Assembly (NCBI GenBank): GCA_000320545.1
Contig: ADNK01002524.1
Location: 1-64,000 of the forward strand
Length of the DNA stretch: 64,000 nucleotides
From: Bigelowiella natans CCMP2755
Lineage: Eukaryota > Protista > Cercozoa
Reading direction: 5' to 3'
Shown here: piece by piece, positions 1,590-52,200 of the stretch
Numbering within the stretch: position 1 is the stretch's first letter
Layout: each line of letters begins with the position of its first letter
Made by a program: the position numbers and the translations under genes
Notes under the pieces: generated by a model
What the model was told of the DNA's origin: nothing
Database searches by the model: none
What the model saw: only the letters and a program-made list of their open reading frames with translations

Positions 1590-1866
1590 TGTGAAACTGT
1601 GCCCAGCGACCAGTTGAGTCGCGGTGGAGGGTGCGTTGGGTTGGCACTAGCAGAGGGCGCAAAGGTTGCGCGGGAAAGGGTTTCGCTGTTTCGGCCATTG
1701 CGCAGTTGTGGACTGCGCGGCGCACTTTCATTGCGTGTTCTGTGGAGCGTTCTGAGAATGCTCCGACCCAAGTTGGCACTCATCACTTTTCAACAGGACA
1801 AACAAGCTTGCTGCTGGCTCATTGCTGCAGGCTGCTGCGCACCTGTCGGGTCTTGACAGGAACAGA
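1590..1866 (+). repeat. 5' LTR of Copia element
   Basis: Starts TGTGAAAC; direct repeat of 6475-6751. Confidence 0.95.
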
Positions 1867-1877
1867 GGTCATGAGCC
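1867..1877 (+). promoter_or_regulatory. Primer-binding site, copia-type half-tRNA-iMet (GGTCATGAGCC, probably from GGTTATGAGCC)
   Basis: Immediately follows the 5' LTR. Resembles the GGTTATG(G/A)GCC PBS of Drosophila copia-like elements, with TA changed to CA. Confidence 0.6.
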
Positions 1878-4800
1878 TCACTGGCGGAAAAGGGATGTTC
1901 GCAGTCGCCAAGAACCTCAAGTTGAGGGCGGACGACTTCGAAGGCCACATTGAAGAGATCGACGACTACTTTGCCATCATGGACTTGATGGACATGTTTG
2001 CGTTGCCTGGTTTGATCGGGAAGAAAGAGAAAATTCTGGTGACCGTGAAGGAGGAAGACAAAGCAAAAAAAGAAAAAGGAATTGTCAAGGTGGACGCCAA
2101 AGTGGATGTAGGAACAGCCAAAGAGGCGAAGTTCGATGATGAAGTTTGTCTGCACCAAGTCTTTGCTGTTTTTGGAGGCACTTTGGAGGAGGAATGCATG
2201 TCACCTTCTCAGGCTTTGCAAACGCCCGACTGGTCATTTCGGGAGTTTGCAAAGACTCTTCCAAAGGACTCCAGGAAGAAAAGGAGAAAAGGATTTGCTG
2301 CACTCAGTCTCACTCTGGAAGACTGCAAACACCCAAAACAAAACACTGATGGAGATCCCGCTGAACTTTGGTGCAACACACTCCTGGAGTTCGAGGGACC
2401 GAGCTTCATGAGACATGTCGCTGTTCTGAAGAGCACAGTCAGTCTCACTTTGGACAATTGTGGTGGGGATTTTGCCAAGTGCGTCGGGACATTGACGAAG
2501 CACTTTGGCAAATTGGAAAGTTTGGGATCGAAGCATTCGGATCAAGAGCGAGTTGGCTTTTCACTTCTTGGATTGCCTGAGGCGGAATTTGACTCAGTTG
2601 CTGCAGTCATCGAAAACCTCAGTGCAATGAAGTTTCAGGATGTTGTCACAAGAACATCAGCTCATTTGAGAAGGAAGCAAGGTGATGAGGGAAACATGCT
2701 TGGGAACATCGGGAACAACAGTGAGAGCAACCAGCCCACTGGTTGGAACAACAGCAATGGGGGACGCTCGGCCTTCCGTGGAGTTTGCTTCTGGTGTGGC
2801 AAACAGGGCCACTCTGAGCGGTTCTGCAAATCTCGCATCGCAGGAAAACCTGAAACGCACACTGGGGGTCGAAAATCTGAGGAAAAATTGGGGAGCATTG
2901 AGCAGGAAGGAAGGGGTTTGGACTTGGGTTCGATCACTCCATTCTTCAACACATGCAACTCAATTTTTCTGCCGAAGGGGTGCTCAATGTTGGATGGGGG
3001 GTGCGGTGGGCACATCGTGAATGGCCCAGATTGGTTCGTGTCTCATGCACCTGGTGCGAACGAACCTCGCATCGTTTTGGCCGATCACAAGACTTCTTTT
3101 CGACCCCGTGGATCTGGCACTGTTTCAGTGCAATCATCGACTGGAAAAATCATGCATCTGAGCAACGTGGCGCACGTTCCGGAGCTGAAAGGGTGTCACA
3201 TCGCTCAACGACGTCTGCGCGTAGATGATGTGAAATGTCAGATCAGGCATGAGAACAAGGGGGAGGCAATCGACTTCCACATCGACAACGAAATTGTCGG
3301 ATCGACGGAGATTGGTCAGGAATGTGATTTGCATTGTTTCAAGGGTGCTCCTGCCAGGAAGGGAACTGCGCCAAACGCGCTGCATGGACACAAGTTTGGG
3401 GACACTGGTGTGCGCAAATGGCATTTGTCTTCATGTCATGCGCCTGCTGAAACCATTCGTCGATTGCAAAAGTGTTCCAAGGGCCTCAAGGTGAATGGCA
3501 AGGCAACTGCTTCGAAGACGGGCGACAAGGGTTCGGGTGCGGGCGACCAGGGTTTGGGCACTGATTCGAACAAATCAGACATCATGGACACTGAGGAAGT
3601 GTGCGAGCGCTGCGAGACTAGTTTTCAACGTGAGAAGACATTTCACCGCAAACCTGACCACTCAGCGAAGAAGTTCCTACCGGGTCAGGTGGCCAGGGGT
3701 GACCTCAAAGTGAAACCATCACGGTCTCGCAAGGGATTCATTCACCATCTTCTGTTGGTGGATGAGGGTTCGAGAGTTCTACACGGTCGTCCTCTGCGCA
3801 CTGAAAACGTTTTTCGTGAGTGTGTGGAATGTGTTCGATGGATCGAGCGCATGTCTGGGCGACAACTCAAGTGCTTCTGCGCTGATGGGGGTGGTGAATT
3901 TGTTGATTCGAAAATTTCTTCGTGGAATGAGAAGAAGGGCATCGAAGAGAAGTTCTCTGCTGCCGAGTCGCAATCCACCAATGGGCAGACTGAAAACCGT
4001 GTTGGTTGGGTCACAAGGGCTGTGCTCAAGGTTTTGAATGCAGCGGAATTGCCTCACACCTGGTGGCCGGAAGCTCTGGAACACGTGTTGCATGCTCACA
4101 ATCGCATGCCACACAAGTTCCACAACTGGCGTGCTCCCATCGAAGCTCTCACTGGACATCCTCCTGATGCATCTCATTTGAAACCTTTTGGCTGCATCGG
4201 ATGGGTGCGAATCAAAGACAGTGAGCTCAGAAAAGGAACATTCATGGATCGGGCTGCACGTTGCCGCATGCTTGGACATGACACTGCTCATGGTGTGCAC
4301 AAGGTGCTCACAGACGCAGGGAAGATTGTGCGTTCTGAGCATGTCAGACTGTTGGATGCTGAGTTCAAGTTCCCTGACAAGGATCCCAGTGTGCTCACTC
4401 GCGCTGAGTCACCAGATCTTGTTTTCGATGCTGAGGGCTCTGTCAGCGCTGAGGAGTGTGCAGATGTGCCTTCACTCGAGCCCCTCGCCGCCGACTTCCC
4501 GGACTCAGATTCTGATTCGGGTTCAGTGTCTGGTGCCGACAACGACGACGATGCTGTCCAGGACTGTCGCAAGCATGATGCGTGTGGGGAGGATGGCTTC
4601 GTCCCAGGTTCGGCGACTGATCCACAGACCACTTCCAGCGACGACTCGAAGCAGGGGGAGAGGCCGCGACGTGAGCGGAAGGCACGCTTCCAATTCGTCC
4701 CTGGAACCGGAAAAGGCGAGCATGATGGACTTCAGCACATCCATTCGTCTGCACTCAAGAAGATCTCGGATTCAGAGGATCATTCTGGCAAAATCTCGAC

Positions 4801-6367
4801 TCCACATGCTCTTGGATCTGTGGAACCCTGTGAACCCAAGTCCTGCGAAGAAGCCATTCAGACTCCGGGTTGGAACAAGAGTGTGGATGAGGAGCTAGCT
4901 GCTTCAGAACGCAATGGCACTTGGGAAGTGGTTGGAATCGAGAAAGCAGGACGCAATGAGCTCGTCACTCACATCTGGGTGCACAAGGAGAAGACAGACA
5001 AGACTGGCAAAGTGAACAGGTCAAAGAGCAGGCTTTGTGCTCGGGGATTCACACAGACTGGTGCAACCTTCAGTGACAAGTTTGCTCCTGCAGTTCGAAT
5101 GGAAACCATGCGTGCAGTCATCGCCTGTGCTGTCAAGCATGGACTCAAAATCTGTCAGGCCGATGTGAACAACGCTTTCCTGCATGGAGTCCTCCAGGAA
5201 CCGGTGTGCATGGAGACACCCAAGCACATGAGAGACAAGTGCTCACATCGCAAGTGTGCACTTGAGCTCAAGAAGGGCATCTGTGGGCTCAAGGTTGGTG
5301 CCAAGGCATGGAACGAGGAGTTCAATCGTCACGTGTTGGATTTGGGATGCAAGCAACTGGAATCCGATCCCTGTGTGCACATCAAACGCGAACATGGCAA
5401 GATTTGCATCGCGTGTCTGCATGTTGACGACCTCATCTGTGCTTCCGACTCCGAAGATCTCAAGAATGAGTTGTTTGAGACAACACGTGAGCTCCATGGA
5501 CTCAAGGACACGTCACGACTTGATCACGTGTTGGGAATCGAGGTGACCACTGACTCAGGGGGAGTTCATTTGAATCAGCGAGCGCACATCGAAAAGAAGC
5601 TGAGGGAGTTTGGATTTCACGAATGCCGTGCAAGCAAGGTGCCAATGCTCGACTCTGGGAACATGACCCTAGATCCTGATGGAGAACTCTGCGACGAGAA
5701 GCTCTGTCGTGCTGAGATTGGTTCACTGGCCTGGACAGCCACTTGCACTCGACCTGACACCAGCTTTGCTCTCTCCAAACTCTCCAGATGTCTCAACTCT
5801 GCAAAGGTGTCCCACATGCAAGCTGCAGATCGTGTGTTCAAGCATCTTGCTGGCACCATGGGGCACAAACTGCGTCTCAAGTCTGACTCTGGTCCGTCGG
5901 AGCTTCGCGTGCACGTGGACGCTGATCACGCTGGTTGCAAGGATGCTCGACGTTCGACATCGGGATGCATCGTCGAACACAATGAGTCTGCCATCGTTTG
6001 GAAATCTGAAAGGCAATCTGGTGCTCCTGTCAAATCCACTGCTGAAGCGGAGCACATTGCAGCATCAGAATCTGTTTCCGACGCAAAATGGCCATCAACA
6101 CTCCTTCGTGAGCTTGGAGAAACTGTTTCTAGTCCCATTTTCGTCATGGAGGACAACAATGCATGCATCAAGATGGCTGAGAATCCAGTGGTGTCTCAAC
6201 GCTCCAAATCGATCGACATCAAGTTCCACATCATTCGCCACTTGGTCAAGGCAGGCGAGTTCAAAGTGGAGCGTGTTTCGACCGATGATCAGGTTGCAGA
6301 CGGGATGACCAAGTCTGTTGGGTCCGACAAGCTCGGGTTGGTGATTGCGAGGCATTTTGGAACGTGA
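1871..6367 (+). CDS. Copia gag-pol polyprotein (open frame but hypermutated, probably non-functional)
   Basis: CCHC knuckle CFWCGKQGHSERFC; protease MLDGGCGGH; integrase WH..CH..C..C, LVDE, ADGGGEF and NGQTENR; RT SRLCARGF, DVNNAFLHG and LHVDDL; RNase H DADHAG, EAEHIA, EDNNAC and QVADGMTK. Integrase precedes RT. Confidence 0.93.
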   Translation: MSLTGGKGMFAVAKNLKLRADDFEGHIEEIDDYFAIMDLMDMFALPGLIGKKEKILVTVKEEDKAKKEKGIVKVDAKVDVGTAKEAKFDDEVCLHQVFAVFGGTLEEECMSPSQALQTPDWSFREFAKTLPKDSRKKRRKGFAALSLTLEDCKHPKQNTDGDPAELWCNTLLEFEGPSFMRHVAVLKSTVSLTLDNCGGDFAKCVGTLTKHFGKLESLGSKHSDQERVGFSLLGLPEAEFDSVAAVIENLSAMKFQDVVTRTSAHLRRKQGDEGNMLGNIGNNSESNQPTGWNNSNGGRSAFRGVCFWCGKQGHSERFCKSRIAGKPETHTGGRKSEEKLGSIEQEGRGLDLGSITPFFNTCNSIFLPKGCSMLDGGCGGHIVNGPDWFVSHAPGANEPRIVLADHKTSFRPRGSGTVSVQSSTGKIMHLSNVAHVPELKGCHIAQRRLRVDDVKCQIRHENKGEAIDFHIDNEIVGSTEIGQECDLHCFKGAPARKGTAPNALHGHKFGDTGVRKWHLSSCHAPAETIRRLQKCSKGLKVNGKATASKTGDKGSGAGDQGLGTDSNKSDIMDTEEVCERCETSFQREKTFHRKPDHSAKKFLPGQVARGDLKVKPSRSRKGFIHHLLLVDEGSRVLHGRPLRTENVFRECVECVRWIERMSGRQLKCFCADGGGEFVDSKISSWNEKKGIEEKFSAAESQSTNGQTENRVGWVTRAVLKVLNAAELPHTWWPEALEHVLHAHNRMPHKFHNWRAPIEALTGHPPDASHLKPFGCIGWVRIKDSELRKGTFMDRAARCRMLGHDTAHGVHKVLTDAGKIVRSEHVRLLDAEFKFPDKDPSVLTRAESPDLVFDAEGSVSAEECADVPSLEPLAADFPDSDSDSGSVSGADNDDDAVQDCRKHDACGEDGFVPGSATDPQTTSSDDSKQGERPRRERKARFQFVPGTGKGEHDGLQHIHSSALKKISDSEDHSGKISTPHALGSVEPCEPKSCEEAIQTPGWNKSVDEELAASERNGTWEVVGIEKAGRNELVTHIWVHKEKTDKTGKVNRSKSRLCARGFTQTGATFSDKFAPAVRMETMRAVIACAVKHGLKICQADVNNAFLHGVLQEPVCMETPKHMRDKCSHRKCALELKKGICGLKVGAKAWNEEFNRHVLDLGCKQLESDPCVHIKREHGKICIACLHVDDLICASDSEDLKNELFETTRELHGLKDTSRLDHVLGIEVTTDSGGVHLNQRAHIEKKLREFGFHECRASKVPMLDSGNMTLDPDGELCDEKLCRAEIGSLAWTATCTRPDTSFALSKLSRCLNSAKVSHMQAADRVFKHLAGTMGHKLRLKSDSGPSELRVHVDADHAGCKDARRSTSGCIVEHNESAIVWKSERQSGAPVKSTAEAEHIAASESVSDAKWPSTLLRELGETVSSPIFVMEDNNACIKMAENPVVSQRSKSIDIKFHIIRHLVKAGEFKVERVSTDDQVADGMTKSVGSDKLGLVIARHFGT

Positions 6368-9910: not shown

Positions 9911-11568
9911 TGAGTGTGTCTGAGAGTAATATATATTTTATTTATGCATGTGTGTATGTGTATGAATGTATATATATGTGCGTGTGTATGTGTTAGTGAG
10001 TGTGTGTATTTCCATGAGGAATATGCTTCTTATGTGCCCATGTATCACGTTTGATTCATATACATGTTTGTGTACGTTTATTGTTATGGGTGCGACTGTG
10101 AGTTTAAGCGTAAATGAGTATGTGGATAAACACACCCGTGCGCATGAATTTAAATGAATCATTGTCTGATGGAGCATATCATCAGTGTTGTGCTTCGATG
10201 AATTTCCCTCTTGCATCTTCTGCGATATTGCAATTTTGACATGAGATTTCATCCAAATTTAAGTTTATTTGCTTGAGTTTGACCACATATTTCTGGATTC
10301 CGACGATTGCAATTCTGAAATTGGTTTAGTGCGAAAGAGCTAAAGTTTTCCAACACGACGCCAACTAAGAAGTTCGAAATTTCAAAAATTTACTATGAAG
10401 ATGTCCAGTTGAATGCCTGGGACTTAGGAGGTGAGCATTTCAGCTCTTCAAGCTTATCAATATAACAGGAAACTGCTTATTGCTTGTCATCATAATCCTC
10501 TCGAGCCAGTGACATCAGTGTGATGTGAAATGATGATGAAATTAAGGGCGATAATGATGCATTCCATCAACTCTTAGGAGAGAAAACGATTCGCCCATTC
10601 TGGCAGCACTACTATGCTTCGCTGGATATTGTGGTAATTCAAAGGAAAAACCATCCTCCTTATTTTTTTGGCGCATTTCCCCCTCGATTTTCGCGGAGAC
10701 ATTCTACATAAACATGCTTGCATTCACAGGTATGGTTGGTTTTTTCGTTCTCTACTGTTTTTTCCCCCTCTGGTGAATTGTAACACTTTCCCGCGACTGT
10801 TTTCATGTTATTTCAGCTATGGTTCATCGATTGCTCGGACAAAAGTAGATTTCAGGAAAGTCTACAGTCGTTGACCAAAGTCCTGGAGGATCCTAAGGTG
10901 TGATTCTTTTTCTCTTTTACCAATGCCCTCGTGCGTATTGTCGTGATCTTGAATTCGTACCTCTTTTCATCTTTGCTTCGCATGTGCATGTGATTATCTC
11001 CGGGCATGTTCACATGTGTGCACCATTCAAACAGAAGTGATGTGATCAAAGCCGTCTGTGGCCTAAAATATATGCACGATTCTGTTTGAAATATCTAAGA
11101 TGTTATTGCTCCATGGTTAAGTGCATTGCCATTCTGACACAGTGTTCTTTTTTGTGGTCCACAAAAGATTCCTATGTTACCTCTTCTGATCGTGTGCAAC
11201 AAACAAGACCTCGCCAATGCAATGCCTGCCAGCGACGTAAGTTTCACCATTTCTTGATTTAAGGAACAAAAAAATCAAAATTTAGAATCTGAGAAGCCTT
11301 GTTGCATTAGATTGAGAAACAAATCCCAGGGTCGAGCCGGTTCAAATTCGTTGTAAGTTCCATCAGTAATTTTGAATGTAATGGCTCACATTATTCATCA
11401 ATGCAATGCACTACCCCTCCGACAATTCTTTGGTATCTGATGATTTCGTGCATGTGTGCGCGCGTGTGTGTGTGCTCTATTTTGTCCTAGTCTTTATCCG
11501 CCAAAAGCGACCCAAAGCCGTTGCTGAATGAGATTGTTAAGGTCCTCAAGGCAGAAAGTAAGAAATGA
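9656..11568 (+). CDS. ARF/ARL-family small GTPase (ARL3-like), 7 exons
   Basis: GT-AG spliced exons give MSLLDKLKKLKKGDKEYKCICLGLDGSGKTT, TTPT, NAWDLGGEKTIRPFWQHYY, FIDCSDKSRF, VCNKQDL and SAK..ESKK*. Confidence 0.88.
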
Positions 11569-12099
11569 GGAACGCCTTCTCATCATGTTGATTCAATTTC
11601 AAGCGCGGAGAAAGAAATGAAGTTCGGATGGGATTGACGACGTTGGTCGATGCCAGGGGACGGAACAAAGGGAAGAAAAGCCAGTACTTGGAGCCAGAAC
11701 TTACACATGCCTGATGAACATAATCAGCTGCATCATGGGCAGATCAGCAGGATCGTTTTATTTGTTTGGAAGATCGATCGAAATCACTAAATTCTCACCA
11801 CTCGTTTTACTAGTTCATTCAATCCACCAATTGTGTCTGCACATGCATGTTGTGATGAGCACGCTGATGCATGCGAAGCGTGCATGATGCAATGGCACTG
11901 TGTTGTGTGCAGCGTGTGTGTGGATGTACGATGGACGCTGAAGCTCCTCGCTCGCGCCGCGCGCAAAACGATGATTGCACAAAAGAAAGACGACTCCAAT
12001 TGTTGTCTCTCTCAGTCATGCCATGACGCCATCACGCGCGCGCGTCATCGATCATCATGTTGGCATCATGCAATGATGAGTGTTTCAGCAATGAATTGA

Positions 12100-13400
12100 A
12101 TCTTTCGCCTGGAGATTCTCATGTGCGATTCACACGCTACATGGGACTTCGAACCAGTCGCAATGAATCCCTGAGAAGCATTTTCCACGGTCCGATGCTC
12201 GCCGTGGTCTGATTTGGACTTCGTCTTGACTTCAGCGCAACAGCTGCAGATGGGTGCATTCTTGGTGCACACATGGTCTCCTGGCAGTCCATGGTGGTGA
12301 CCTTAGATGGCGGGGGTTCGGGAGTTGTTGGGCGAACAATTCTGCGTGCGAAGCCGCCGTCAATCCCCAATCAATGCCGCAGGTGCTCCCCCTGTCCTTG
12401 CCATCATCCTTCTCAGATCTTTGCTTCTTGTTCCTGTTGTTGGCGTTCTTGTGACAGTGGCAGCGTGTGTGTGACTCGCTGCCACATGGTCTGCATGGAG
12501 CTTTGCATTGTTGCTCGCCTCCCGCATGATTCTTCTTGCAATTGAGGCACTTGAATGAGCGTTCAGTGGCATGAGGATCATCAGAGCAGCTGGATCCATG
12601 CATGTGCTTCTTGTGATGACCTTTGTGCTTCTTTTCGTAGCTGCTGTGGCCCACGTTGGCTCCTGCAGGATTGGTCAGAGCACTGCAGTCGTCTCGGTTC
12701 TCAACCAGTTCTTGAACGAACCTCCTGCAGAGATGGGATCTTCTTCACAGAAGCGTCGAAGATCTGCTGCTTCAAAGACGCGCACTTCGCTAGTTCGGGT
12801 CCAATCCCTTCACGTGGAGCAGCATTGAGAGGATGGGATTGAGTTGTTGTTTCTGACTTTCGAAGTGGTGGATCAACTCATTGAACGCACAGGTGCAGTC
12901 CTTGCTGTTGCCGGTCTGTCGCAGAGAAAGCAAGCTTTCGAATTGCACCATCAAGTTGGCTTTCCCCCCTGCAAAGAACTTCTTGTGGAGGGTCTCGCAG
13001 GCCGCGACACCGTCGTTCTTTCGCACTCCTGCATTGTTGAGTGTCCGCTAGTCCGGTGGACCGAGTCGGAGATGTGCCCGAGAATGACATCCCAAATCAC
13101 TTCACTGGAGTTGTCGAAGAGAGCTTGAGTGTGCTGCTTTGCATGCATCTCATCTTGCTTCGCTTCGTTCTTGGAGCTGTCCTTCTGTGACCGCTGCATC
13201 GTTTTGGAGGCCACAGGGATTTCCAACAGTTTCGTGGTCGGCGACATGATGAGGGGTGGAGTGTCACCATGTCCGCCGCATCTGGTCATGGATCGCAGTG
13301 AAAACCAGCAAGTGGTCCAGAACGGTTCATCATCAGTCTGCAGTTGGGTCCTTTCTGTTTGATTTTGGACTCCAACCTCGCGCACCACACATTGTGAGAG
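12100..13400 (-). mobile_element. Degenerate LTR-retrotransposon gag remnant, hypermutated
   Basis: Frameshifted minus-strand pieces with gag-like helical segments (ETLHKKFFAGGKANLMVQFESLLSLRQ..KGLDPN) and tandem Zn knuckles (CLNCKKNH..C, CRPCGSESH..C). Confidence 0.6.
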
Positions 13401-14626
13401 GCCACAGCCTCCTTGGATCCATCAAAGATTCGCCGTGCTCGACCGTCGTCAAGATTGGAGCTCACAACCCGTGAGAACGCAAGTCAAATGCGCAAATTGG
13501 AGATCGATCAAAACCCTGTTGAACGAATCAGATTTTGGCTCAGATGCATGCTGCACATGGCTGCAATCGCTGCAATGAACTCCCCACTGACCTCTGTCGA
13601 GGGCCTGATGCTTGCTAGCTTGGGGTGATCGATCTGCGAATCTCGGGATCTGAGTCCGCAGATCTGCAGCAGTTTGGGGGAAATCCCCCCAACTCCCTCG
13701 CTGGTTGCGACAAGAGTCCTTGTCGCATTGATGCGAATGGCGTGAGCCCATTTCGCACATTCAAGACTCAACTCAACTGACTCCAGACTTCGTTCAACTT
13801 CGCACTTGCTTCTGTCGAAGTCATGCTCATGCATCCATGCATGGCAATGGTGTCAATCTCGTTGCAGTTGCATTGCGCAGCGCTAGCAACACAACCGAGC
13901 CAATGCAAGCTTCAACAAACATCAAGTCCACAAAACCAATGCCCTGTTGAATGCACGATGTGAGCTGGTCATGCATGAGCAAACTGCCAAAGGAGAAAGC
14001 TCACCGCTTGCTAGCTTGCTTGCGGGTCGTTCAGAGTGTGCCAAACTAGCCACTTGCGCGCCAATGCACATCATGCGCTGGACACACAGCATCCCCATCA
14101 GCAGCATGCTGCGCATCACAGTTGCCCAAAAATTCGGGAAAAATTTCAGCCATTTTTCCCCAAAACGTCACACCACGCAGGCCGACTCCTTGTCGCAAGT
14201 GAAACACCGAGGGTGCTCCTGGAAAACATCCACAGTTTGCCAACCGAGATGGATGTTTTCCCGCTGCACGTGCCCCCTCCCATGACCACGTTTCTGGGCA
14301 TGCAACGTGAGTTGCATGCCCCCATGTGACCAGCCAAGCTGCAGTGGGTGCAGCCTGAACCCATGTGAGCATGCCTGCATGAAAATGTGAGACATGACAA
14401 AGCACAACGTGCACCATCATTTGCACTCATGCATGCGCATGCGCACCTACGTGCACTTGGTGGTCGCAGACTGACCACACTCGTGTCACACGATGTCACG
14501 TGTGCACGAAGTGCGTGTTGGATGGTGTTGCATGTCTGCGCACCACTTTCCATGCAAAGTGAAAGCACTTGCTGCTGATTGGCGTGCGCGTGCAGAGAAC
14601 GCATCGTGTGCATGCATGATGATTCA

Positions 14627-15037
14627 CAAGTCCGTCAAACCCGGCAACGACGGGGTTGTGAACAGTGCAGCGCTTTGCGACGCGCTTTGAAGCAGCAGGC
14701 AGTTGCAGTTGGTCAAAGAAAAGTCATCAGAACTTGTCCGATGGCCAAACCTGAAAAAATGACCGAAGCGTTGACCAAAATGTCCATTTTCAAGGCCTCA
14801 AAAGGTGAAAATTCACACTGTCACACACCCGTTGTGCAGCGGATGCACGCTGCGCGTTTGTTCTCTGCCACACTTTGAATGCTTTTGCGTGTGCGTTTGA
14901 CCAAGTGTGATGTGCACGAAAATTTTCAAAGAAATGCGAGCAAATCCAATGTCCATTGCATCACATGACGCGCTTGGTCGCGCGCAAAAGCTTCCAAATG
15001 CACATTCTGGCGATTCGTTGCAGGTTTGACGGACTTG
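14627..15037. mobile_element. MITE copy A (Tc1/mariner-type)
   Basis: 15-bp TIRs CAAGTCCGTCAAACC...GGTTTGACGGACTTG, flanked by CA and TG (probable mutated TA TSD). Homologous to 49037-49448. Confidence 0.85.
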
Positions 15038-16844
15038 TGTTGGGTTCATGTTTTCACGGTCGAGAAAAGAACCCTGACCCCAAATTGGCATGGATCCTGG
15101 TCTGTGGTTTGGTGTTCGTTGGCAGACGTGCACAGCTCACGATCAGTTTTTTCGCTGATCTGGTCACAATGGGGGAAAGCGGCTGCAGGAAGCAGCACAG
15201 TGTTGATGTTCGTGTCAGTTCCCACGTCAAGAAGGGGGTGCGTTGGATCACTTTCACTTCAGCGCATTCTCGTGGGAACGCGGATGGTGTGCGAGCAACA
15301 CTGCATTGCTTGCCGCACAACGTTGCGTGCACGTGAGCAAAATTGCACGCAAGAGAAGACGTTTCACAGTCAGGCAAGACTTTTCCGTTCAGTTGCGCGA
15401 AGACACGGCTGGGTGGTGCAATGGGAGCGAATTTGCACGTGCGACGTCAGGTGATTTGAGTCTTTTGAGGTGAATTGGCAGTCGACCCGTTGAGGGGCGA
15501 AGCCCCTCCCAACTGACCAACCTGAGCATTGTTCGTGTGACAAGTTCCAGAGTTCCAGAGTTGTTTGTTCAGCATTGCGAATCACTGTGAATCCCACGCA
15601 ATGGTCATTGTGAACACACTCGAGCATGTTTTGACCGTTGAAAGTGTTCAGTTTTTGCTGCATCGGCTGAAGTGATGTTGAAACGACACCTCAGAATCCA
15701 GATCACAGCACCTGGCTCGTGCGCAGACCACTGACTGCAACCACCACAAAAAACAGTCCAGGTGCAGTGGTGTGGATTCTGAGATGTCACTTTGGCATCA
15801 CTTCAGCCGATCCAGCGATGTGGCAAAAACTCCAGGTGGAACTGAACACTTTCAACTGGTCAAAACACACCTCAGTGCGTTCACAATGATCGCTGCCAAG
15901 CGCTCGCGCGAAAAAAACACGAGACATGGCTCACACTTGCGTTTTGCGACAACGTGCGGTTCAGGCTGCTTGTCGCCACCAGGTTCATCTTTGGGTGTTG
16001 AAACTTTGGCTGTCCATCGACTGGGACGTGATCAACACGATGTGCGAACTGAGTGTGTGCAACGTTTCAGTTTGTCTGACTTGCATTGCACCGAAGTTTC
16101 CAGAAAATTCTGAAAACCCCCCATTTCAAACCATCAAAAATCGCACAAGTGTGGACTTTGGTGGAGTTTTGGACCACGTCGTGTCATCGAACCGATTGCA
16201 ATCTTGTGGCATGGTGGCCAGGTGTGCGCACGATGCAAGCAAAAAGTGCAGCAAATTGCGGCGGCGTCCATCTCAACCATGAAAATTCCCGGGTTTCGCC
16301 TGGTTGTGTGAAAATTTGCCCACGGACGACCTGCTGCTGGACTGAATTGCCAGAATGAAACGATGAAAATCCAAGCTAGCTAGGCACATCACGTGTCTTT
16401 TGTGAAAACAATCATTGTCAAAAGTGACACAGTGGCAAAAATCCACAGCAGAGCATGGCGCCATCGTGTCGCATTGCAGTCACAGAACGCCGTCCACAAT
16501 CACTAGAATCAAACTTTGTGAAAGATTTTTCGAAATTCTTCATCAGCACATTCCATTGGAATTCCAGCTGCCATGATTTCTTTCCTTCGGTACAAGTCCA
16601 TGATGATCTTGTGGTCATGGGCATGCTCCTTTAGCAAATCCTTTTTCTTTGAAAGTTTCTTACCTACAAAGAGAACAATTCTTCAGTTGCTAGAACACCG
16701 CACACAATGAAGGTTGCTACCCTTGTTGCCACGGAGCATCCATCGCATTTCCAACGCCGCATCCACTTCATCCTTTGTCAGTGAGGTCACATCAAGCCCT
16801 TTCTTGGCAAGTTTTGTGGAGTCCTTTTCCGGCTTCTCCCATCG

Positions 16845-18467
16845 TCATACAACTTTTTCCAATGATTTGTTCGGCACGAGATACACATAAACCAATTTGA
16901 CGTCGCCTGGAATTTCCATAATTCCTAATCTTCTAATCATATCAGCGAAATGTTTGATGTTCCCTTGATACTTTACTAATGTCTTTACGTTACCAAGGTC
17001 CCCCATGGTTTTAAAAGTCGGCTCGGAGACTGTCACGTCAAACACATACAACGTCATGTCGTCTAAGATTGCAAAGTCCACACAAGGAAAGTTTGGATCC
17101 CGATAGTTGGTGGCCATGACATTGCGTTCGATAGGCCACCAATCTCGCCTAGCAATCTCCATTTCTCCTGGGAAAGACATGCTGATGTTGTGTTTCAGTT
17201 TCCCATCCTCAATAGACCCTGCGCGCACCCTTGCTCCTACTTGTAGAATTGACCCGCACAGTTCTTCAAACTTTGCCCCCGCAAAACATCGATTTCCGTT
17301 CTGAATATATTTGCAAACTTCGTTCTTCAGCAGAAGAATCTGATTCCGCTTTTGCTCTAGGTTCAGTTTACCAAAAGTGTACGGTCGCCACTTCGTCACA
17401 TATTCTGAGAAATCAGGAGATTTTGCCTTCAGGTCCACCAAGGCGTGGCTGTACTCGTCAAGACTCTCATTGAAATTCTTATCTGACTGTAAGTGTTTTG
17501 CCATTGCGTCCACAATATCCGTTTCCCGTCTCTTCATGTCCATGTCGCTACCCAGCACAAATCTCGGCGCACCGCCAACTTTCTCATATCTTTCCTTGAT
17601 TACCTTTGAAGCAATTTTGCTCTTTTTCAACAAGGTGTTCATCCCGATAAGCTCCTCAAGCGTACAAGCTGACAAATAATACACTAGTGAGACCTTCAGA
17701 TACTTAGCAATAGCCCGTTTTCGTGGAGACTGGAATATTATTAAAAATGTGTTGATCATCTTGTCTCTCAGTCCCATACAGTATCCGGTGTCTTCAATGT
17801 TGTTGCTATCGGCAAGAACCAGAGGAAGTTTACTGAGTTCTAAATACACAGCGTCATCGAGCTTGGCGAACACTCGGCACTTGCTCACATCTTTGGACAG
17901 GATCACAGCATGAGTTGTCCCAATTATCAATCCCACGTCCTCTCCTTGTTTCAGAACAACAAAAATAATATGCTGAATTTTTACCGTTTTGCCGATGCCG
18001 GGATTTCCTGTGAGTAGAACACTGTGTTTGATGCCATCAGCTCTGATTTCTGGGGTGAAATCTTTTTCTTCTGGAAGGTTGCTGAATGGGAAGTTACCAA
18101 CCCCCTTGGCACGATGTTTGTGGAAGTATCTGGCACTCTGAAGGATCTTATTGTGGACGACTCTCGTCTCCGCTCGTACCCACAACGTTTCGCCAACCAG
18201 TTCGCCCTGTCTGACCAGATCGAACTTACAACTTTTCATCACAAGCATTGCCTCGACTTTGCCCAGGTACTTCACTGGGGATGAGACCATTTCTTCTTTC
18301 TCTTTAGCATCCATTGTTTCGCCGAGATGCTCTCGAAAGAGTTTGGGTGTTTGCATCAGAAACTCTTTTAACGCTGGCCTAAGGCTCTTCTGAAGAGCTT
18401 CTTCACTCAGACGCACTTGTAATTGGATACATGATCGAAATGATGAGTCATACCGTGCGATAGTCAT
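16845..18467 (-). CDS. Crinkler/RHS-like protein: P-loop NTPase plus PD-(D/E)xK REase-like C-terminus
   Basis: 540-aa intronless ORF with Walker A GNPGIGKT, ERYEKVGGAPRFV, GAKFEE, PNFPCVDF and FDVTVS, as seen in CRN/RHS NTPase-REase effectors. Tyrosine and TpA content are normal. Confidence 0.72.
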   Translation of the reverse strand: MTIARYDSSFRSCIQLQVRLSEEALQKSLRPALKEFLMQTPKLFREHLGETMDAKEKEEMVSSPVKYLGKVEAMLVMKSCKFDLVRQGELVGETLWVRAETRVVHNKILQSARYFHKHRAKGVGNFPFSNLPEEKDFTPEIRADGIKHSVLLTGNPGIGKTVKIQHIIFVVLKQGEDVGLIIGTTHAVILSKDVSKCRVFAKLDDAVYLELSKLPLVLADSNNIEDTGYCMGLRDKMINTFLIIFQSPRKRAIAKYLKVSLVYYLSACTLEELIGMNTLLKKSKIASKVIKERYEKVGGAPRFVLGSDMDMKRRETDIVDAMAKHLQSDKNFNESLDEYSHALVDLKAKSPDFSEYVTKWRPYTFGKLNLEQKRNQILLLKNEVCKYIQNGNRCFAGAKFEELCGSILQVGARVRAGSIEDGKLKHNISMSFPGEMEIARRDWWPIERNVMATNYRDPNFPCVDFAILDDMTLYVFDVTVSEPTFKTMGDLGNVKTLVKYQGNIKHFADMIRRLGIMEIPGDVKLVYVYLVPNKSLEKVV

Positions 18468-47465: not shown

Positions 47466-49036
47466 TATCTTTTTAGAAGATGACTATGACGATGATGACG
47501 GATTCCTCATCTCCCTGATGCAATAAATAAATTCTGCAACAACAAAAAGCACTAAATGAAAATCCCTTACAGTCTTTAGTATAAACGTAGAGGGATTTCA
47601 CACTGCTGTTTCTGCTGCTGAACACATATCTACCTTTGCATTATGCTATATTCTGCTTTAAAAGAGTGATGATGGTTTTCTGTATAAATCTTTGGATTAA
47701 ACATATGTCGTCCTCTAAATCTCACTTCTTATTTTGTAACGACATGAATACATACACATAAGTATGATTTCAATTTTTGTTATTTCAGTAGTAGATAAAT
47801 GCACTCCTTTCCAATGAGAGTAATAACATGTTGAGCAGCCAATGCTTCAGCAAGAGAGTAGGGGATTGACGCAAAATAATACGTGTTTTCATCCCTCTTT
47901 TAGAGCAGATGCTCTTCTGTCTACGGCATCATGTTTCCGGGCAGTCATCATATCTAATAATGTTTCACGAGCAGTAATTGCATCACAACTGTCACATTTG
48001 AATTTTTTCAGTATTGTTATTTCATACAACTACACACATGGTGATGGTGGTCGTCGGTACATGACGATTCATTTAATCATGACCATAGCTTGATGCACAA
48101 GTGTGCACTGCAATGCATGCATGTGCGTTGGGCAACATGATTGTGCCAATGATCTAGCAATGATTGCGGTGCTACGATGACAAGCTAGCAAGGCGCTTGC
48201 ATTCAGGTCAAAAGCTGCGCGAAACTAGGGCTCTGAAAATTATCTGCTTGCTTGCCAGTTGTGTTGATCGCGCGATCGCCAAATCACTCGATCATCGTGA
48301 TGCGAACGTGCAACGCAAGCTAGCAATGATGTGCTAGCATGACTGCATCAAATGTGCAACGAATGGCATGAGCTTTTGATCAAGAGTCATTGAGTACATG
48401 TTTGCGCGTTCGATTCATGTGCGCCCAGCTAGCCAGGTGCATGCTTTTTGCGTGCGTGTGCTGAAACTTCGCATGTCCACAAAGCTAGTACGTGTGCACA
48501 CACCCTCATGAGCTTGCAAAACTTGTGGCACGCAAATGCAAATGCGCTAGCGTGTTCAAAAGTGGCAAGAATTTTTCAATTTTCGCCCGCTGGCAGGCGT
48601 TGAAAAATGAGGTTTTCAAGCTGAAATTCGAAAAAGAAATCAAATTTGAACCTCAAACAGGCTCCAGTGTGCTTCCAATGTCCAATTCCAGAATTGCAAC
48701 GATTGAGCGCGCTAGGCCGCACGCGCAAAGCACAGTTTGTTCAAAACCCACTCGTCACCGGGATTGACACAGTTGTGAGCTGGTCAGCATGTCCAGATCT
48801 GTGACTGGCGGGAGATGGCTTGTCAGGCTGGCATGGACAGCATCACCTGTCTAGCTGTCTGGCTGTGTGTCGTGGACAAACGTGATGCAATCTGGCACGT
48901 CAGCGAACCTGCTGCGCAGTGACAATGCCGCCATGCACACGATGTCATGACTCCACCTGCACGTCTGTCGATGTCGATCGTGTCGTGTGTGTGATGATGT
49001 GCAAGTGACGATGATGGAATCATTGTGCTTGTGACA

Positions 49037-49448
49037 CAGCTCCGTCAAACCCGGTGACGACGAGGTTGTGAACAGTGCAGCGCTTTGCGACGCGCTTTGA
49101 ATCAGCAGGCAGTTGCAGTTGGTCAAAGAAAAGTCATCAGAACTTGTCCGATGGCCAAACCTCAAAAAATGACCGAAGTGTTGACCCAAGTGTCCATTTT
49201 CAAGGCCTCAGTGAGCGCGCAAAGTGTGAAAATTCACACCCGTTGTGCAGAGGATGCACGCTGCGCGTTTGTTCTCTGCCACGTTTTGAATGCTTTTGCG
49301 CGTGTGTTTGACCAAGTGTGACATGCACGAAAAAATTCAAAGAAATGCGAGCAAGTCCAATGTCCATTGCATCACACAACGCGCTTGGTCGCGCGCAAAA
49401 GCTTCCAAGTGCACGTTCTGGCGATTCGTTGCAGGTTTGACGGAGCTG
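49037..49448. mobile_element. MITE copy B (Tc1/mariner-type)
   Basis: TIRs CAGCTCCGTCAAACC...GGTTTGACGGAGCTG, flanked by CA and TG. Homologous to 14627-15037. Confidence 0.85.
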
Positions 49449-49449
49449 T

Positions 49450-52200
49450 GGACGATTGCCTGCGCCAGTGCGATGCACGTGCCGGTTGTTGGCGTGCAAA
49501 CGTGCCGCGCCTTCGGTTTGCACATTCATCGCTTGCGTGGGAGTTGGCGTGCTGTCATTGTCGTTGTGGATTGTCTGAACTTGCTCAGCCTGCACTGGTG
49601 CATGGCAGCAGGCGCTGTGCGATGATGCGACGCGGCGTTGAAACCACTTGTGTGCAGGACGGCCGCAGCCAGGCTGTTTGCAATTGTCCCTCTGCGCCGC
49701 GCTTGCGCCCGCAACACGTCGCGCAACATCGGACAATTGACGGAAAACATCAACCTTTGATGAACACCATTGAACATCAAACAATCAGCATCAGTGTCAA
49801 TCCCCATTGACACTGAGGATGCAGGATCATCCACAAAATCACCAGCGCCGTCGCCGGTGTGATTCCTGCCCAGTCTCAAGAATTGCGAATGCCAGAACTC
49901 CGTCTGAAACATCACCCGATTGGGCAACACCCCTCTCGACGCTGTCTTGCCTCTCCCCACCTCGCACCGACACCTCCCCAGGGTCGTTGCTTGCTCTTCG
50001 TCCTCTTCGCATCTCTCCCTCCACTTCCTTTCGGCCTGCCGCCGTTTGGTTCAATCACGGAGGAGTGATTGCCGTTTGCCAACTGCAATCCCCTCCGTTC
50101 ACTTCCCTCTCTGTCGGTCTCCTAGACTCAATTCGATGCGGAGGCAATCCCCTCCGCTCGCTTCCCTCTGTGTCGATCAAACGGAGGCAATCCCCTCCGT
50201 TCAATCCCCTCTCTGTTGACCACTTGTTGATGACAATGATGCACTTGCTGCTCCTGTCGCAGCCCCCTTTGGCAACCAACTTGTTGCCCCCGTGCCATCA
50301 CGACAACCCCTTGTCGTGATGACGACCATTGCGACAACCGCTTGTCGCAATGTGATGACAACAATGATGATGACTGCACAATGATGATGATGACCGCAAC
50401 GACAACCGCTCGTCGCAAGCCGGTTGCGTCCCAAGCGCCCCCTGCCAACGGGCCGCTGAACAGGCGCCAATGTGGGCGCCAACGTGACGACAATGGCGAC
50501 AACAGGCGCCCATGAGCGCCACGCCATGTCCGCATGTCCGCCGTGACCAGGCGCGACATGCATGCATGCATGCATCAGGATGATGTGCAACTGCACTGTT
50601 GTCCTTGAACTCGTCGTCAAGGCAAGCTGCGTGCTTCGGAGTGCTGGAGTGGCTAGGTGGGTGACGCTGATCGGTCAGCACGCCGCGATCGTGGATTTTG
50701 GGTGCTGCGCAGGTGCACAGGGGCACACGGCAGTCGCAGGGTTGAAGTTGAGACGCACACGCACTGTTGCACGCAACCGATTCGTTCTGCATCCCGTGCA
50801 GCTGTCAATTGTTGCAGCAATGTGCGCCTTCGCATGCAAACGATTCGTTCTGCATCGAGTGCAGCTGTTGGTTGTGCCGCAGCATTGGGCGTGGTGCAAC
50901 ATGGTCTCGTGTTGAGAACTGAAGTCGCACGAGTCGTTGAGTTGCATTGTTGCTTGGTTCTTGAGTTGCGCTTGCTAGCTTGTCACTTGAACGTTTGAGT
51001 TCTGATGTCACTTGGTCGTTTGCGTTCTGGGAGTGTTTGGTCACTTGTGCGGTTGAGTTCTGATCTCCAGATCTCAGTGCATCACTTGGACTTTTGAGTT
51101 CTGATGTCACTCGGACTTTTGAGTTCTGCTGAGGTGTGTCTGAGTTGCTGCAATTGCGACTTGAGTGAAAAGCTGTCAGGTTTTCACTTTTGTCGTGTCG
51201 CAATGTCAGCTTTTCACCTTTGTCGTGTCGTCACGTGCGAAGCTTTCTGAGAAATTTCTGCACGGCAAGCTTTTCACTGCTGCCACATCGTCCCACGTGG
51301 AGCGTCGTGCTCGCACGTCCGACACGCGCGCTCGCACGTGCAGCTTCACTGGCACGCCCTGTGTGTCTTGTCGCACTTGAGCAGAAAGCTGCATCGTGGC
51401 GCCATGCATCGCAGCGCCACACAAGCACTCCGATCCAGTGCCAGCCGTCCCACAGCGTCGCGGATTGGAAGCAAGGAAGTGAAACTGGAAAGGCTTGGTT
51501 GTGTTTGGGATCGAATTGCTGTGCAAGCTAGCTAGCTAGAGATCCGTCAGTTGACCGTTGCACTTGTTTTCCATGCTCATGCGCTGATGGACACAGGACA
51601 TGCTCTCACGCGTCACTTGCATGTGAACTTCTGCATGATGATCGATTTCACTCAGCAGCATGCAGGGCATGCGCACATTGCAGCACGCGCGCATGCAAGC
51701 GCCCACGCACTCTGCAGACTGACCGAACGTGGGGGTGCATGCGCACAGCACGCACGCACGGCAAACGAGCATGTGCATGCATTTTGTTGTTTGTCGAAAA
51801 ATGATGCGACCCCAATGACGAAATTGGACCTAGCTAGCTAGCTAGCTAGCAGCTAGCTAGAGGTGGAAAAAAATGTGATTGGTTCATTTGTGAAAGAGCG
51901 CAACCAGCCCTTTCGATTGCGCCCAACCTCAGCTCCTCCCAACGTCCGGTTGCCGAGAAAACTCATTTTTTGTGAAAATACGCGCGTTTGCCCCAGTTGT
52001 GACGGTCAGTGCTGCGCGTGCATGAAATCAAAACCTGTTCTGGCATTGCAAGGCAGCGGCGCTGTGAGTCCGCACAACGTGTTGTGTGTGTGTGTGTGTG
52101 TGTGTGTGTCATCTGATGAATCTGTGGTAGAAGTAAATCTTGTTAAAATGCAAATGAAATGCAAACAATGACGGTTCCGGCTGAATCGTTCATCACACTG
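49450..52200. other. Unclassified TpA-depleted, repeat-like sequence
   Basis: GC-shifted and nearly TpA-free, with internal short direct repeats (e.g. TTTTCAC(T/C)TTTGTCGTGTCG x2, GAGTTCTGATGTCACT) and (CTAG)n runs. No recognisable protein. Confidence 0.45.

Follow-up and report, generated by a model that had tools for sequence, protein, structure and literature searches.

A TpA-specific hypermutation that turns TpA into TpG or CpA has, very probably, erased all TA dinucleotides from two copies of a MITE family in Bigelowiella natans, after their insertion and within silent, kilobase-scale tracts. The two copies, A and B, lie in the window, i.e. the whole 64,000-nucleotide stretch of contig ADNK01002524.1 (B. 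natans CCMP2755) that was analysed. They are a new example rather than a new system, the process being already known for B. natans: Mettrop et al. 2026 described TpA hypermutation in viral DNA integrated into its genome, and mutation-accumulation lines gained 230 de novo changes (A→G/T→C), all at TpA, with Sanger confirmation for a subset of the mutations in these lines (bioRxiv 10.64898/2026.01.13.699255).

Copies A and B and the tracts around them

Copy A, a 415-bp member of the A-type subfamily, extends from 14625 to 15039, as defined by its TIR matches (14625-14641 on the plus strand and 15023-15039 on the minus strand; TIR pattern search) and by the family alignment. Copy B, a 416-bp member of the B-type subfamily with the end CACAGCTCC, extends from 49035 to 49450 (apart from the TIR matches, features are given without strand). 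Neither copy contains a single TA, compared to about 26 expected from base composition (26.5 in copy A). A remnant of one end of a further copy of this MITE (48738-48777) is situated 257 bp upstream of copy B, its 40-nt arm being 80% complementary to 49035-49074.

Over 405 aligned positions, copies A and B show 28 differences. The first-pass annotation had singled out three CA/TG double mismatches between them, and these were confirmed in the pairwise as well as in the 74-copy alignment: CA at 14645-14646 in copy A versus TG at 49055-49056 in copy B (site 1), TG at 14911-14912 versus CA at 49322-49323 (site 2) and TG at 14966-14967 versus CA at 49377-49378 (site 3). When the 28 changes were placed randomly, keeping the observed number of transitions, 0.17 such double mismatches arose on average (P(≥3) = 0.00055).

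Both copies are embedded in more extensive TA-erased DNA. The tract with copy A covers about 4.4 kb (11930-16376) and retains 11 TA, of which seven belong to CTAG; around this copy, at 14448-16377, lies the longest stretch without TA in the window. In the tract with copy B (about 3.7 kb, 48250-51970), all remaining TA except two (48395 and 48489) are part of CTAG. Observed/expected TA ratios are 0.00-0.07 in the tracts around the two copies and 0.00-0.09 in three parts of the window (1-8 kb, 12-16.3 kb and 49-51 kb), where CA/TG ratios amount to 1.3-2.0 (mostly 1.4-1.8). Open reading frames in both tracts are short only (110-194 aa), and RNA reads are almost absent from the unique parts of the copy A tract. 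The left flank of copy A at 14325-14480 is a repeat with at least 29 copies, while the remainder of both flanks is unique.

The MITE family comprises about 150 genomic copies of 400-415 bp with 17-bp terminal inverted repeats that start with CAC and end with GTG; the TIR pattern matched the genome 152 times in forward and 155 times in reverse orientation, a reversed control pattern 0 times. Both elements had initially been delimited two bases further inward (14627-15037 and 49037-49448), and the flanking CA...TG had been taken for a mutated Tc1/mariner TA duplication. We found instead that CA...TG lies inside the element, as the invariant outermost bases of its own inverted repeat (CACAAGTCC...), and that all 60 copies with canonical ends have it, even those whose TA are all retained and which lie in TA-rich DNA. 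Directly outside CACA...TGTG, 40 of these 60 copies show a perfect 2-bp duplication (about four 2-base matches are expected by chance) and another 10 a 3-bp duplication, of varied sequence (TT, GA, GG, AT, TC, AG and others). Copy A is bounded by TT (14623-14624 and 15040-15041), copy B by GA (49033-49034 and 49451-49452). The Tc1/mariner assignment fails because the actual TSDs, 2-3 bp long, vary in sequence and CA...TG belongs to the element. Stowaway-type (Tc1/mariner) MITEs are similar in size and copy number, but their defining TA duplication is absent from the present family. CACTA/CMC elements (EnSpm, Mirage, Chapaev) and their MITEs, on the other hand, share the 5'-CAC...GTG-3' termini, the 17-bp inverted repeat and 2-3-bp TSDs without sequence preference. 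Judged from termini and TSDs, the MITE appears to be a non-autonomous, CACTA/CMC-like DNA transposon and a putative member of this superfamily. No paralogous empty site was found for copy A, and TSD statistics were used instead. Read-contig joints (14620→15039, 13491→15039 and others) were considered as excision alleles and rejected, as their short side covers only 20 letters and the joined sequence differs from the expected empty site.

Ancestral dinucleotides and mutation spectrum

Alignment of 74 of the approximately 150 genomic copies, comprising both subfamilies, supports TA as the ancestral dinucleotide at sites 1 and 2. Site 1 (column 55) reads TA in 28, TG in 25, CA in 21 and CG in 0 of the 74 copies (TA16/TG14/CA5 in the B-type), and site 2 (column 469) reads CA in 39, TG in 28, TA in six and CG in 0 (CA21/TG11/TA2 in the B-type), TA being retained at both sites within both subfamilies. 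Three further founder-TA sites of copy A are now TG at 14710-14711 (column 133; A-type TA17/TG16/CA6), CA at 14837-14838 (column 333; A-type CA23/TA11/TG5) and TG at 15019-15020 (column 658; TG36/TA27/CA10). Save for single TC/CT cells, columns 55, 133, 333, 469 and 658 contain TA, CA and TG only, never CG, and copies L010, L015 and L016, located in TA-normal DNA, have TA at all five. Every founder-TA column exhibits both TG and CA outcomes.

At site 3 (column 571), A-type copies read TG, or CG in three of them; neither CA nor TA occurs among them, and TG is also what the least-mutated copies L010, L015 and L016 have. The TG of copy A is therefore inherited from the A-type founder and is no private change. 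The CA/TG split at this column is confined to the subfamily of copy B (TG21/CA12/CG2/TA0), and TA does not occur at site 3 among the 74 aligned copies. We infer that the B-type founder probably had TA here; a CG founder is unlikely, because true CpG columns remain CG in 67-71 of 74 copies. Hence the original proposal of an ancestral TA changed on opposite strands in the two copies, by independent, post-insertion mutation, stands for sites 1 and 2 and has to be abandoned for site 3 of copy A, as for the TA duplication.

The changes are almost exclusively transitions (553 versus 8 transversions at founder-TA bases), and in 307 of the 404 cells of a conservative founder-TA set in the 74 copies, TA has become CA or TG. 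Per base, transitions reach 0.42 at TpA and 0.036 at ApT, compared with 0.007 at the other A/T, 0.014 at CpG and 0.012 at the remaining G/C. With TA loss, ApT transitions climb from 1.7% to 5.8% (Spearman 0.46, p = 4e-5), while transition divergence at G/C is 1.2% in erased and intact copies alike; erased copies are not older than intact ones.

These data show that each founder TA was changed in place, after insertion and one site at a time; TpA-specific A:T→G:C hypermutation has very probably removed every TA in both tracts, some CTAG excepted. The TG or CA outcome is set by the strand whose base changed, and CG does not form directly because a single change already abolishes the TpA target. 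ApT represents a weaker context of the same process. Chemically, an adenine 3' of T may be deaminated in DNA to hypoxanthine, which is read as G, by a deaminase that, as proposed in the preprint, might be guided to silenced transposon or viral chromatin. The genome contains one A_deamin locus (C2414:14438-15741), a candidate only, and an ADAT2-like candidate deaminase, Bn78255, has been put forward for B. natans (bioRxiv 10.64898/2026.01.13.699255).

We consider it improbable, but worth weighing, that the thymine of TpA is modified instead, without adenine deamination, by JBP/TET-type oxidation to 5-hydroxymethyl- or 5-formyl-uracil, which mispairs with G and yields T→C. 5-Formyluracil causes A:T→G:C transitions, and a T→C change read from the opposite strand is A→G, so that the data fit both; as TpA and ApT are both self-complementary, adenine deamination and thymine modification are indistinguishable by sequence. 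Adenine deamination is favored by the two candidate deaminases and by the 5'-U/T preference, which is typical of adenosine deaminases (bioRxiv 10.64898/2026.01.13.699255). In addition, the genome lacks a Tet_JBP (PF12851) match, a weak negative given that the controls likewise gave no signal.

The strand changed at one site has no bearing on the strand changed at another. Same-strand pairs number 106 versus 110 expected in A-type and 164 versus 173 expected in B-type copies, and fully erased A-type copies display 13 distinct patterns in 19 copies. Five of these share one pattern, which was considered as a sign of descent from an erased master and dismissed: the site frequencies make it the most probable pattern, expected in about 2.6 of 19 copies, and the excess is not significant. 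On the family tree, CA/TG states at columns 55, 333, 469 and 571 scatter about as much as shuffled labels. Moreover, the two halves of some TSDs are now discordant, namely TA/CA (L017), TAA/CAA (L050), CAT/TGT (L036) and CA/TG (L073). As the tree, built on about 400 bp, separates A-type from B-type and is weakly resolved inside the subfamilies, independence is supported mainly by the TSD pairs and by the non-linkage of sites.

That copies A and B simply derive from source copies already mutated in different ways, with nothing happening after insertion, is unlikely as a full account, but inheritance does hold for part of the data. Apart from the subfamily state at site 3 of copy A, observed/expected TA is only 0.21 even in the least-mutated copies, columns 133 and 333 were already fixed in the B-type founder, for TG and CA, respectively, and column 634 tracks the tree (7 changes versus 28 with shuffled labels). 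Furthermore, erased copies can still transpose, because the terminal repeats contain no TA. Against inheritance as the sole cause, sites 1 and 2 keep TA in both subfamilies with states scattered on the tree, sites within a copy are unlinked, TSD pairs and unique flanks are mutated as well, and copies A and B reside within erased tracts of 4.4 and 3.7 kb.

Decay of 5-methylcytosine, by which the polymorphic columns would have been CG and become TG or CA, has very little to recommend it, even though CA/TG polymorphism is the classic footprint of CpG decay and CG does appear in a few cells of columns 219, 571 and 634. The outcome that the first-pass annotation would have taken as a refutation, CG in unmutated copies, did not appear: less-mutated copies have TA and never CG at sites 1 and 2, which refutes CpG decay; TA persists there in 28 and six copies. 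True CpG columns are conserved (see above), and CpG is not more mutable than other G/C in the family (transitions 1.4% versus 1.2%). The rare CG cells are all found at ATG or CAT, fitting the secondary A→G change of the mutator at ApT.

In line with the first-pass annotation, which had argued against a purely deterministic base-calling error, the TA-free DNA does not stem from miscalled bases. Contigs from three independent Illumina runs (2025) match 12028-13578 and 15014/15101-16148 with 0 differences; one, from run X1 (14421-14653), spans the 5' junction of copy A, again with 0 differences and with CA at 14645. Fourteen DNA runs (2025, 11 samples) contain 86-92% of sampled words. A modified base in the self-complementary TA, miscalled on one strand and settled as CA or TG by the mix of read strands, would accommodate sharp tract borders, but this explanation is practically eliminated by the identity of these contigs to the TA-free DNA, by the presence of TA at some loci and CA/TG at others within the same family, and by the de novo changes in the Illumina data of the preprint, which also verified a subset of its mutations by Sanger sequencing (bioRxiv 10.64898/2026.01.13.699255). 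Contigs of runs X1, X2 and X9 revealed no new TA changes at the copy A locus, a tract nearly devoid of TA, in contigs that lose rare variants.

Erasure across loci and flanks

Erasure differs sharply between loci. Of the 74 aligned copies, 21 are nearly intact. Observed/expected TA in the flanks of erased copies climbs from 0.23 within 0-100 bp to 0.75 at 1.4 kb; in the flanks of intact copies it is flat at about 0.9. The median extent of erasure beyond the element is 425 bp for fully erased, 110 bp for partly erased and 0 bp for intact copies, and in nine of 33 erased copies the erased tract stops less than 400 bp out on both sides. Erasure thus peaks on the element and weakens across a few hundred base pairs of flank, some copies being struck and others of equal age spared. 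A passive model, with the MITE merely sitting in tracts that are targeted on other grounds, becomes less probable.

Tentatively, and with the odds somewhat against it, the MITE copies may themselves be the nucleation points of a guided, locus-switched TpA editor that acts outward, the family passing through cycles of erasure and bursts. An epigenetic or small-RNA switch would mark individual copies locus by locus, and from a marked copy the editor would spread 0.1-1 kb into unique DNA, perhaps reaching neighbouring genes. Copies of equal age that evade marking would remain intact; since erased copies would keep their mobility through the TA-free terminal repeats, the family would alternate between erasure and fresh bursts. 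This idea has no counterpart in the preprint (bioRxiv 10.64898/2026.01.13.699255).

Relation to known processes

The MITE tracts resemble the process of Mettrop et al. in several respects: only A:T→G:C changes at TpA occur, producing TpG or CpA depending on the strand; the NCLDV region found hypermutable in the preprint shares its transcriptional silence with the tracts around copies A and B; the process is active in some lineages or loci and inactive in others; and its targets are biased to transposon-type domains. It was measured in two viral inserts, with older activity deduced from dinucleotide statistics and transposons named only as potential targets. The preprint contains no transposon family alignments establishing polarity, no MITE family and no strand non-linkage between sites, nor does it report an ApT secondary context, sparing of CTAG or a decay of erasure with distance, all three of which are seen here. 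With ApT (0.036), the published TpA rule gains a weaker second context.

Fungal RIP is likewise dinucleotide-specific and transition-only, riddles transposon copies and leaks into adjoining DNA. However, RIP makes TpA from CpA, while the process here consumes an ancestral TA, and RIP needs duplicated sequence and a sexual cycle. Here, 21 of 74 copies are nearly untouched despite about 150 homologues, and a single-copy viral insert is targeted and vegetative lines mutate (bioRxiv 10.64898/2026.01.13.699255). We therefore rejected RIP on the grounds of its opposite polarity and the nearly intact homologous copies. Editing by ADAR/ADAT and APOBEC enzymes shares the 5' U/T beside the edited A and the mutation directed against invading sequences, but acts on RNA or single-stranded cDNA and leaves strand-coordinated clusters, whereas in the MITE family the chromosomal DNA of a cut-and-paste element and its unique flanks are changed on both strands in an uncoordinated manner.

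Very few processes of targeted A:T→G:C DNA hypermutation are known from eukaryotes; the TpA eraser is one of them and has so far been described in one preprint. With about 150 copies, the MITE family constitutes an independent natural experiment on it, providing the polarity (TA to CA/TG), extending the targets from viral inserts to cut-and-paste transposons and revealing an all-or-little outcome per locus at equal copy age. These patterns constrain any proposed enzyme and targeting pathway, and the partly erased copies offer ready loci at which the process can be watched in culture.

CA/TG mismatches and their ancestral state

Copies A and B of the MITE are 91% identical in pairwise alignment. 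Of 405 positions aligned over the element itself, 28 differ, 19 of them by a transition. As the first-pass annotation had reported, they show three CA/TG double mismatches, at 14645/49055 (site 1), 14911/49322 (site 2) and 14966/49377 (site 3; copy A/copy B), compared to a mean of 0.17 when changes were placed at random with their number and kind kept (P[≥3] = 0.0006). No TA remains in either copy (~26 expected from base composition), and nearly all of their private changes are TpA- or ApT-type, with four (copy A) and seven (copy B) private ApT transitions and a single G/C transition in each.

The annotation argued against a purely deterministic base-calling error, and the TA-free DNA is no such artefact. 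In fourteen DNA runs of 2025 (11 samples), 86-92% of the words sampled from 11500-17400 are present. Contigs from three independent runs show no differences over 12028-13578 and 15014/15101-16148, and one contig covers 14421-14653, including the 5′ junction of copy A and the CA at 14645; contigs within the MITE are collapsed across all copies, and the contig check in copy A is limited to site 1. Contig joints from 14620, 13491 and 13505 to 15039-15040, present in three runs at single-copy depth with a short side of only 20 letters, did not match the expected empty site in the three DNA runs.

A search of 91.4 Mb of genome yielded at least 148 candidate MITE copies, and a 17-base end pattern gave 152 forward and 155 reverse matches genome-wide, versus none for a reversed control pattern. 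We aligned 74 copies with their flanks, comprising an A-type subfamily (39 copies including copy A, end CACAAGTCC) and a B-type subfamily (35 copies including copy B, end CACAGCTCC); the end-pattern search also recovered a third end variant, CACAACTCC. At site 1 (alignment column 55), 28 of the 74 copies read TA, 25 TG, 21 CA and none CG; at site 2 (column 469) the counts are CA 39, TG 28, TA 6 and CG 0, and both subfamilies keep TA at both sites. Columns 133, 333 and 658 (copy A 14710, 14837 and 15019) behave in the same way. TA stands at all five columns in copies L010, L015 and L016, whose flanks have TA observed/expected ratios of 0.74-1.2. The proposed ancestral TA is thus borne out at sites 1 and 2, where the least-mutated copies carry TA and none carries CG.

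Site 3 (column 571; TG 57, CA 12, CG 5, TA 0) does not follow the proposal that an ancestral TA was hit oppositely in the two copies. As every A-type copy, including intact ones, reads TG or (in three copies) CG, the TG of copy A goes back to the A-type founder. A split is seen in the B-type only (TG 21, CA 12, CG 2). A CG founder is unlikely there, because true CpG columns keep CG in 67-71 of 74 copies; a TA founder, wholly consumed, is the better inference. The rare CG cells all lie where TG or CA stands in an ApT context (ATG or CAT), which fits ApT as a second, weaker target of this mutator.

Element ends and target-site duplications

The CA...TG around the copies had been taken for mutated TA duplications of a Tc1/mariner-type element. 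However, the outermost CA and TG occur in all canonical-end copies, even those that keep every TA in TA-rich DNA, and are therefore the outermost inverted-repeat bases of the element itself. Just outside them, a perfect 2-bp direct repeat is found in 40 of 60 canonical-end copies and a 3-bp repeat in another 10 of 60, while chance would give two-base flank matches in ~4 of 60. These target-site duplications vary in sequence (TT, GA, GG, AT, TC, AG, TA and others); copy A (14625-15039) is flanked by TT and copy B (49035-49450) by GA. With CAC...GTG ends and 2-3-bp duplications of varied sequence, the Tc1/mariner assignment fails. In ends and duplication length, and in these features only, the MITE resembles CACTA/CMC elements.

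The same contig carries a third copy of the MITE beyond the window (G000:C1213:131080-131483); this one is B-type and has retained TA at site 1. A relic 3′ end of the same MITE is found at 48738-48777, 257 bp upstream of copy B.

Mutation spectrum, independence and timing

Relative to the subfamily founders of the 74-copy alignment, transitions per base amount to 0.42 at TpA, 0.036 at ApT, 0.007 at other A/T, 0.014 at CpG and 0.012 at other G/C. CpG is thus not hypermutable, and 5mC CpG decay was therefore discarded. In a conservative set of founder-TA cells, 307 of 404 are now CA or TG and 4 of 404 are CG. ApT transitions climb with TA loss, from 1.7% in little-hit to 5.8% in fully erased copies (Spearman 0.46, p = 4e-5), and this secondary target would account for the few CG cells in columns that once held TA. 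The target rule is TpA strongly, ApT weakly, with CTAG spared. Across the 74 loci, A to G changes at ApT affect 4.7% of opportunities in AAT, 3.5% in CAT and 0.8% in GAT. Since G/C transitions stand at 1.2% in little-hit and fully erased copies alike, erased copies are no older than intact ones; some loci were struck and others spared.

Each site took one hit, and both strands were struck without linkage. On a tree built with TA columns left out, which is weak within subfamilies, state changes were close to those with shuffled labels at column 55 (33 vs. 35), column 333 (20 vs. 21), column 469 (26 vs. 28) and column 571 (16 vs. 16), while column 634 tracks the subfamily split (7 vs. 28). Same-strand pairs of mutated sites within a copy numbered 106 (110 expected) in the A-type and 164 (173 expected) in the B-type, and 19 fully erased A-type copies show 13 distinct patterns. 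In the symmetric ATAT context of site 2, A-type copies carry TG 17 times and CA 18 times, while asymmetric contexts are biased (e.g. column 333, CA 23 vs. TG 5); at the five sites, the choice between CA and TG is random, weighted by adjacent bases. The two members of a target-site duplication are identical at insertion, and four pairs are now unequal (TA/CA, TAA/CAA, CAT/TGT and CA/TG). Together with the tree and strand results, these pairs uphold, for sites 1 and 2, the earlier claim of independent, post-insertion, stochastic two-strand mutation.

Part of the TA loss nevertheless predates insertion. Intact copies have a TA observed/expected ratio of only 0.21 and an excess of CA+TG (L010, L015 and L016 hold 6 TA each vs. 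28-29 expected), and TG (column 133) and CA (column 333) were already fixed in the B-type founder. The family had therefore undergone erasure once before and still continued to transpose. The terminal repeats lack TA.

Erased tracts and the mutator

Copies A and B lie in tracts almost devoid of TA (observed/expected 0.00-0.09), at 11930-16376 and 48250-51970, respectively; a third tract spans ~1-8 kb of the window. Surviving TA is mostly CTAG, commonest as GCTAGC; short (GCTA)n runs occur at 51529-51537 and 51831-51858, and the remainder is chiefly CTAC/GTAG (TAG on one strand) or GTAC (no TAG). The near-TA-less DNA at 1631-6367 (+) holds an unbroken 1578-aa ORF with gag, RVT_2 and other copia-type domains, the length of which says little on function because a TAA or TAG stop can hardly occur in such DNA. 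In the copy A tract, nested inverted repeats at 15598-15896 (59-nt arms 83%, 39-nt arms 77% complementary) form a ~300 bp hairpin-like unit that may be another small non-autonomous element, and 14325-14480, in the left flank of copy A, belongs to a dispersed repeat present in at least 29 copies in the genome (75-92% identical); several repeats are thus nested together in this tract. In one RNA run (X21), unique parts of the copy A tract are nearly free of reads, those mapped to 14455-15045 could stem from any MITE copy, and DNA just beyond both borders (11500-11893 and 16425-16818) is expressed.

The mutator acts in chromosomal DNA at specific loci, and erasure decays with distance from the MITE. 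Flanks of fully erased copies rise in TA observed/expected from 0.23 at 0-100 bp to 0.75 at 1.4 kb (median reach 425 bp, quartiles 135-915), those of partly erased copies from 0.38 to 0.80 (median 110 bp), and those of intact copies are flat at ~0.9 (median 0 bp). The tract is confined to <400 bp on both sides in 9 of 33 erased copies. With 53 of 74 copies hit, erasure is far more frequent in the element than in the genome at large. These observations fit targeting centred on the MITE with short-range spill-over; the data also leave room for a passive reading, in which an adjacent feature is the true target and the MITE merely nearby.

The process is already published, and our results add detail rather than a new system. 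Illumina sequencing (JGI) of B. natans mutation-accumulation lines, with Sanger verification of a subset of the mutations, found 231 mutations in two viral inserts, of which 230 were A->G or T->C, all 230 at TpA, at ~6e-7 per site per generation and restricted to some lines (bioRxiv 10.64898/2026.01.13.699255). Since one hypermutable insert was single-copy, the process does not depend on homology. The same preprint reported 124 TpA-depleted genomic clusters and enrichment of transposon-type domains in TpA-poor CDS, named transposons only as potential targets, and proposed an ADAT2-like enzyme. The genome analysed here has the same TpA signature; a family-based polarity test, the MITE, the ApT and CTAG rules, a strand-linkage test and a distance profile are not part of that study. 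Apart from the preprint, no account of the process came up in a literature search, nor did any description of MITEs in B. natans.

In the chemistry we favor, the adenine 3′ of T would be deaminated to hypoxanthine and then copied as G. Oxidation of thymine, which then mispairs with G, would leave the same sequence outcome, because TpA and ApT are both self-complementary; a Tet_JBP match is absent from the genome, a weak negative for oxidation. For deamination, the ADAR/ADAT1-type domain A_deamin (PF02137), at a locus that may or may not be among the five adenosine deaminases examined in the preprint, has its sole genomic match at G000:C2414:14438-15741, in three exon-like pieces.
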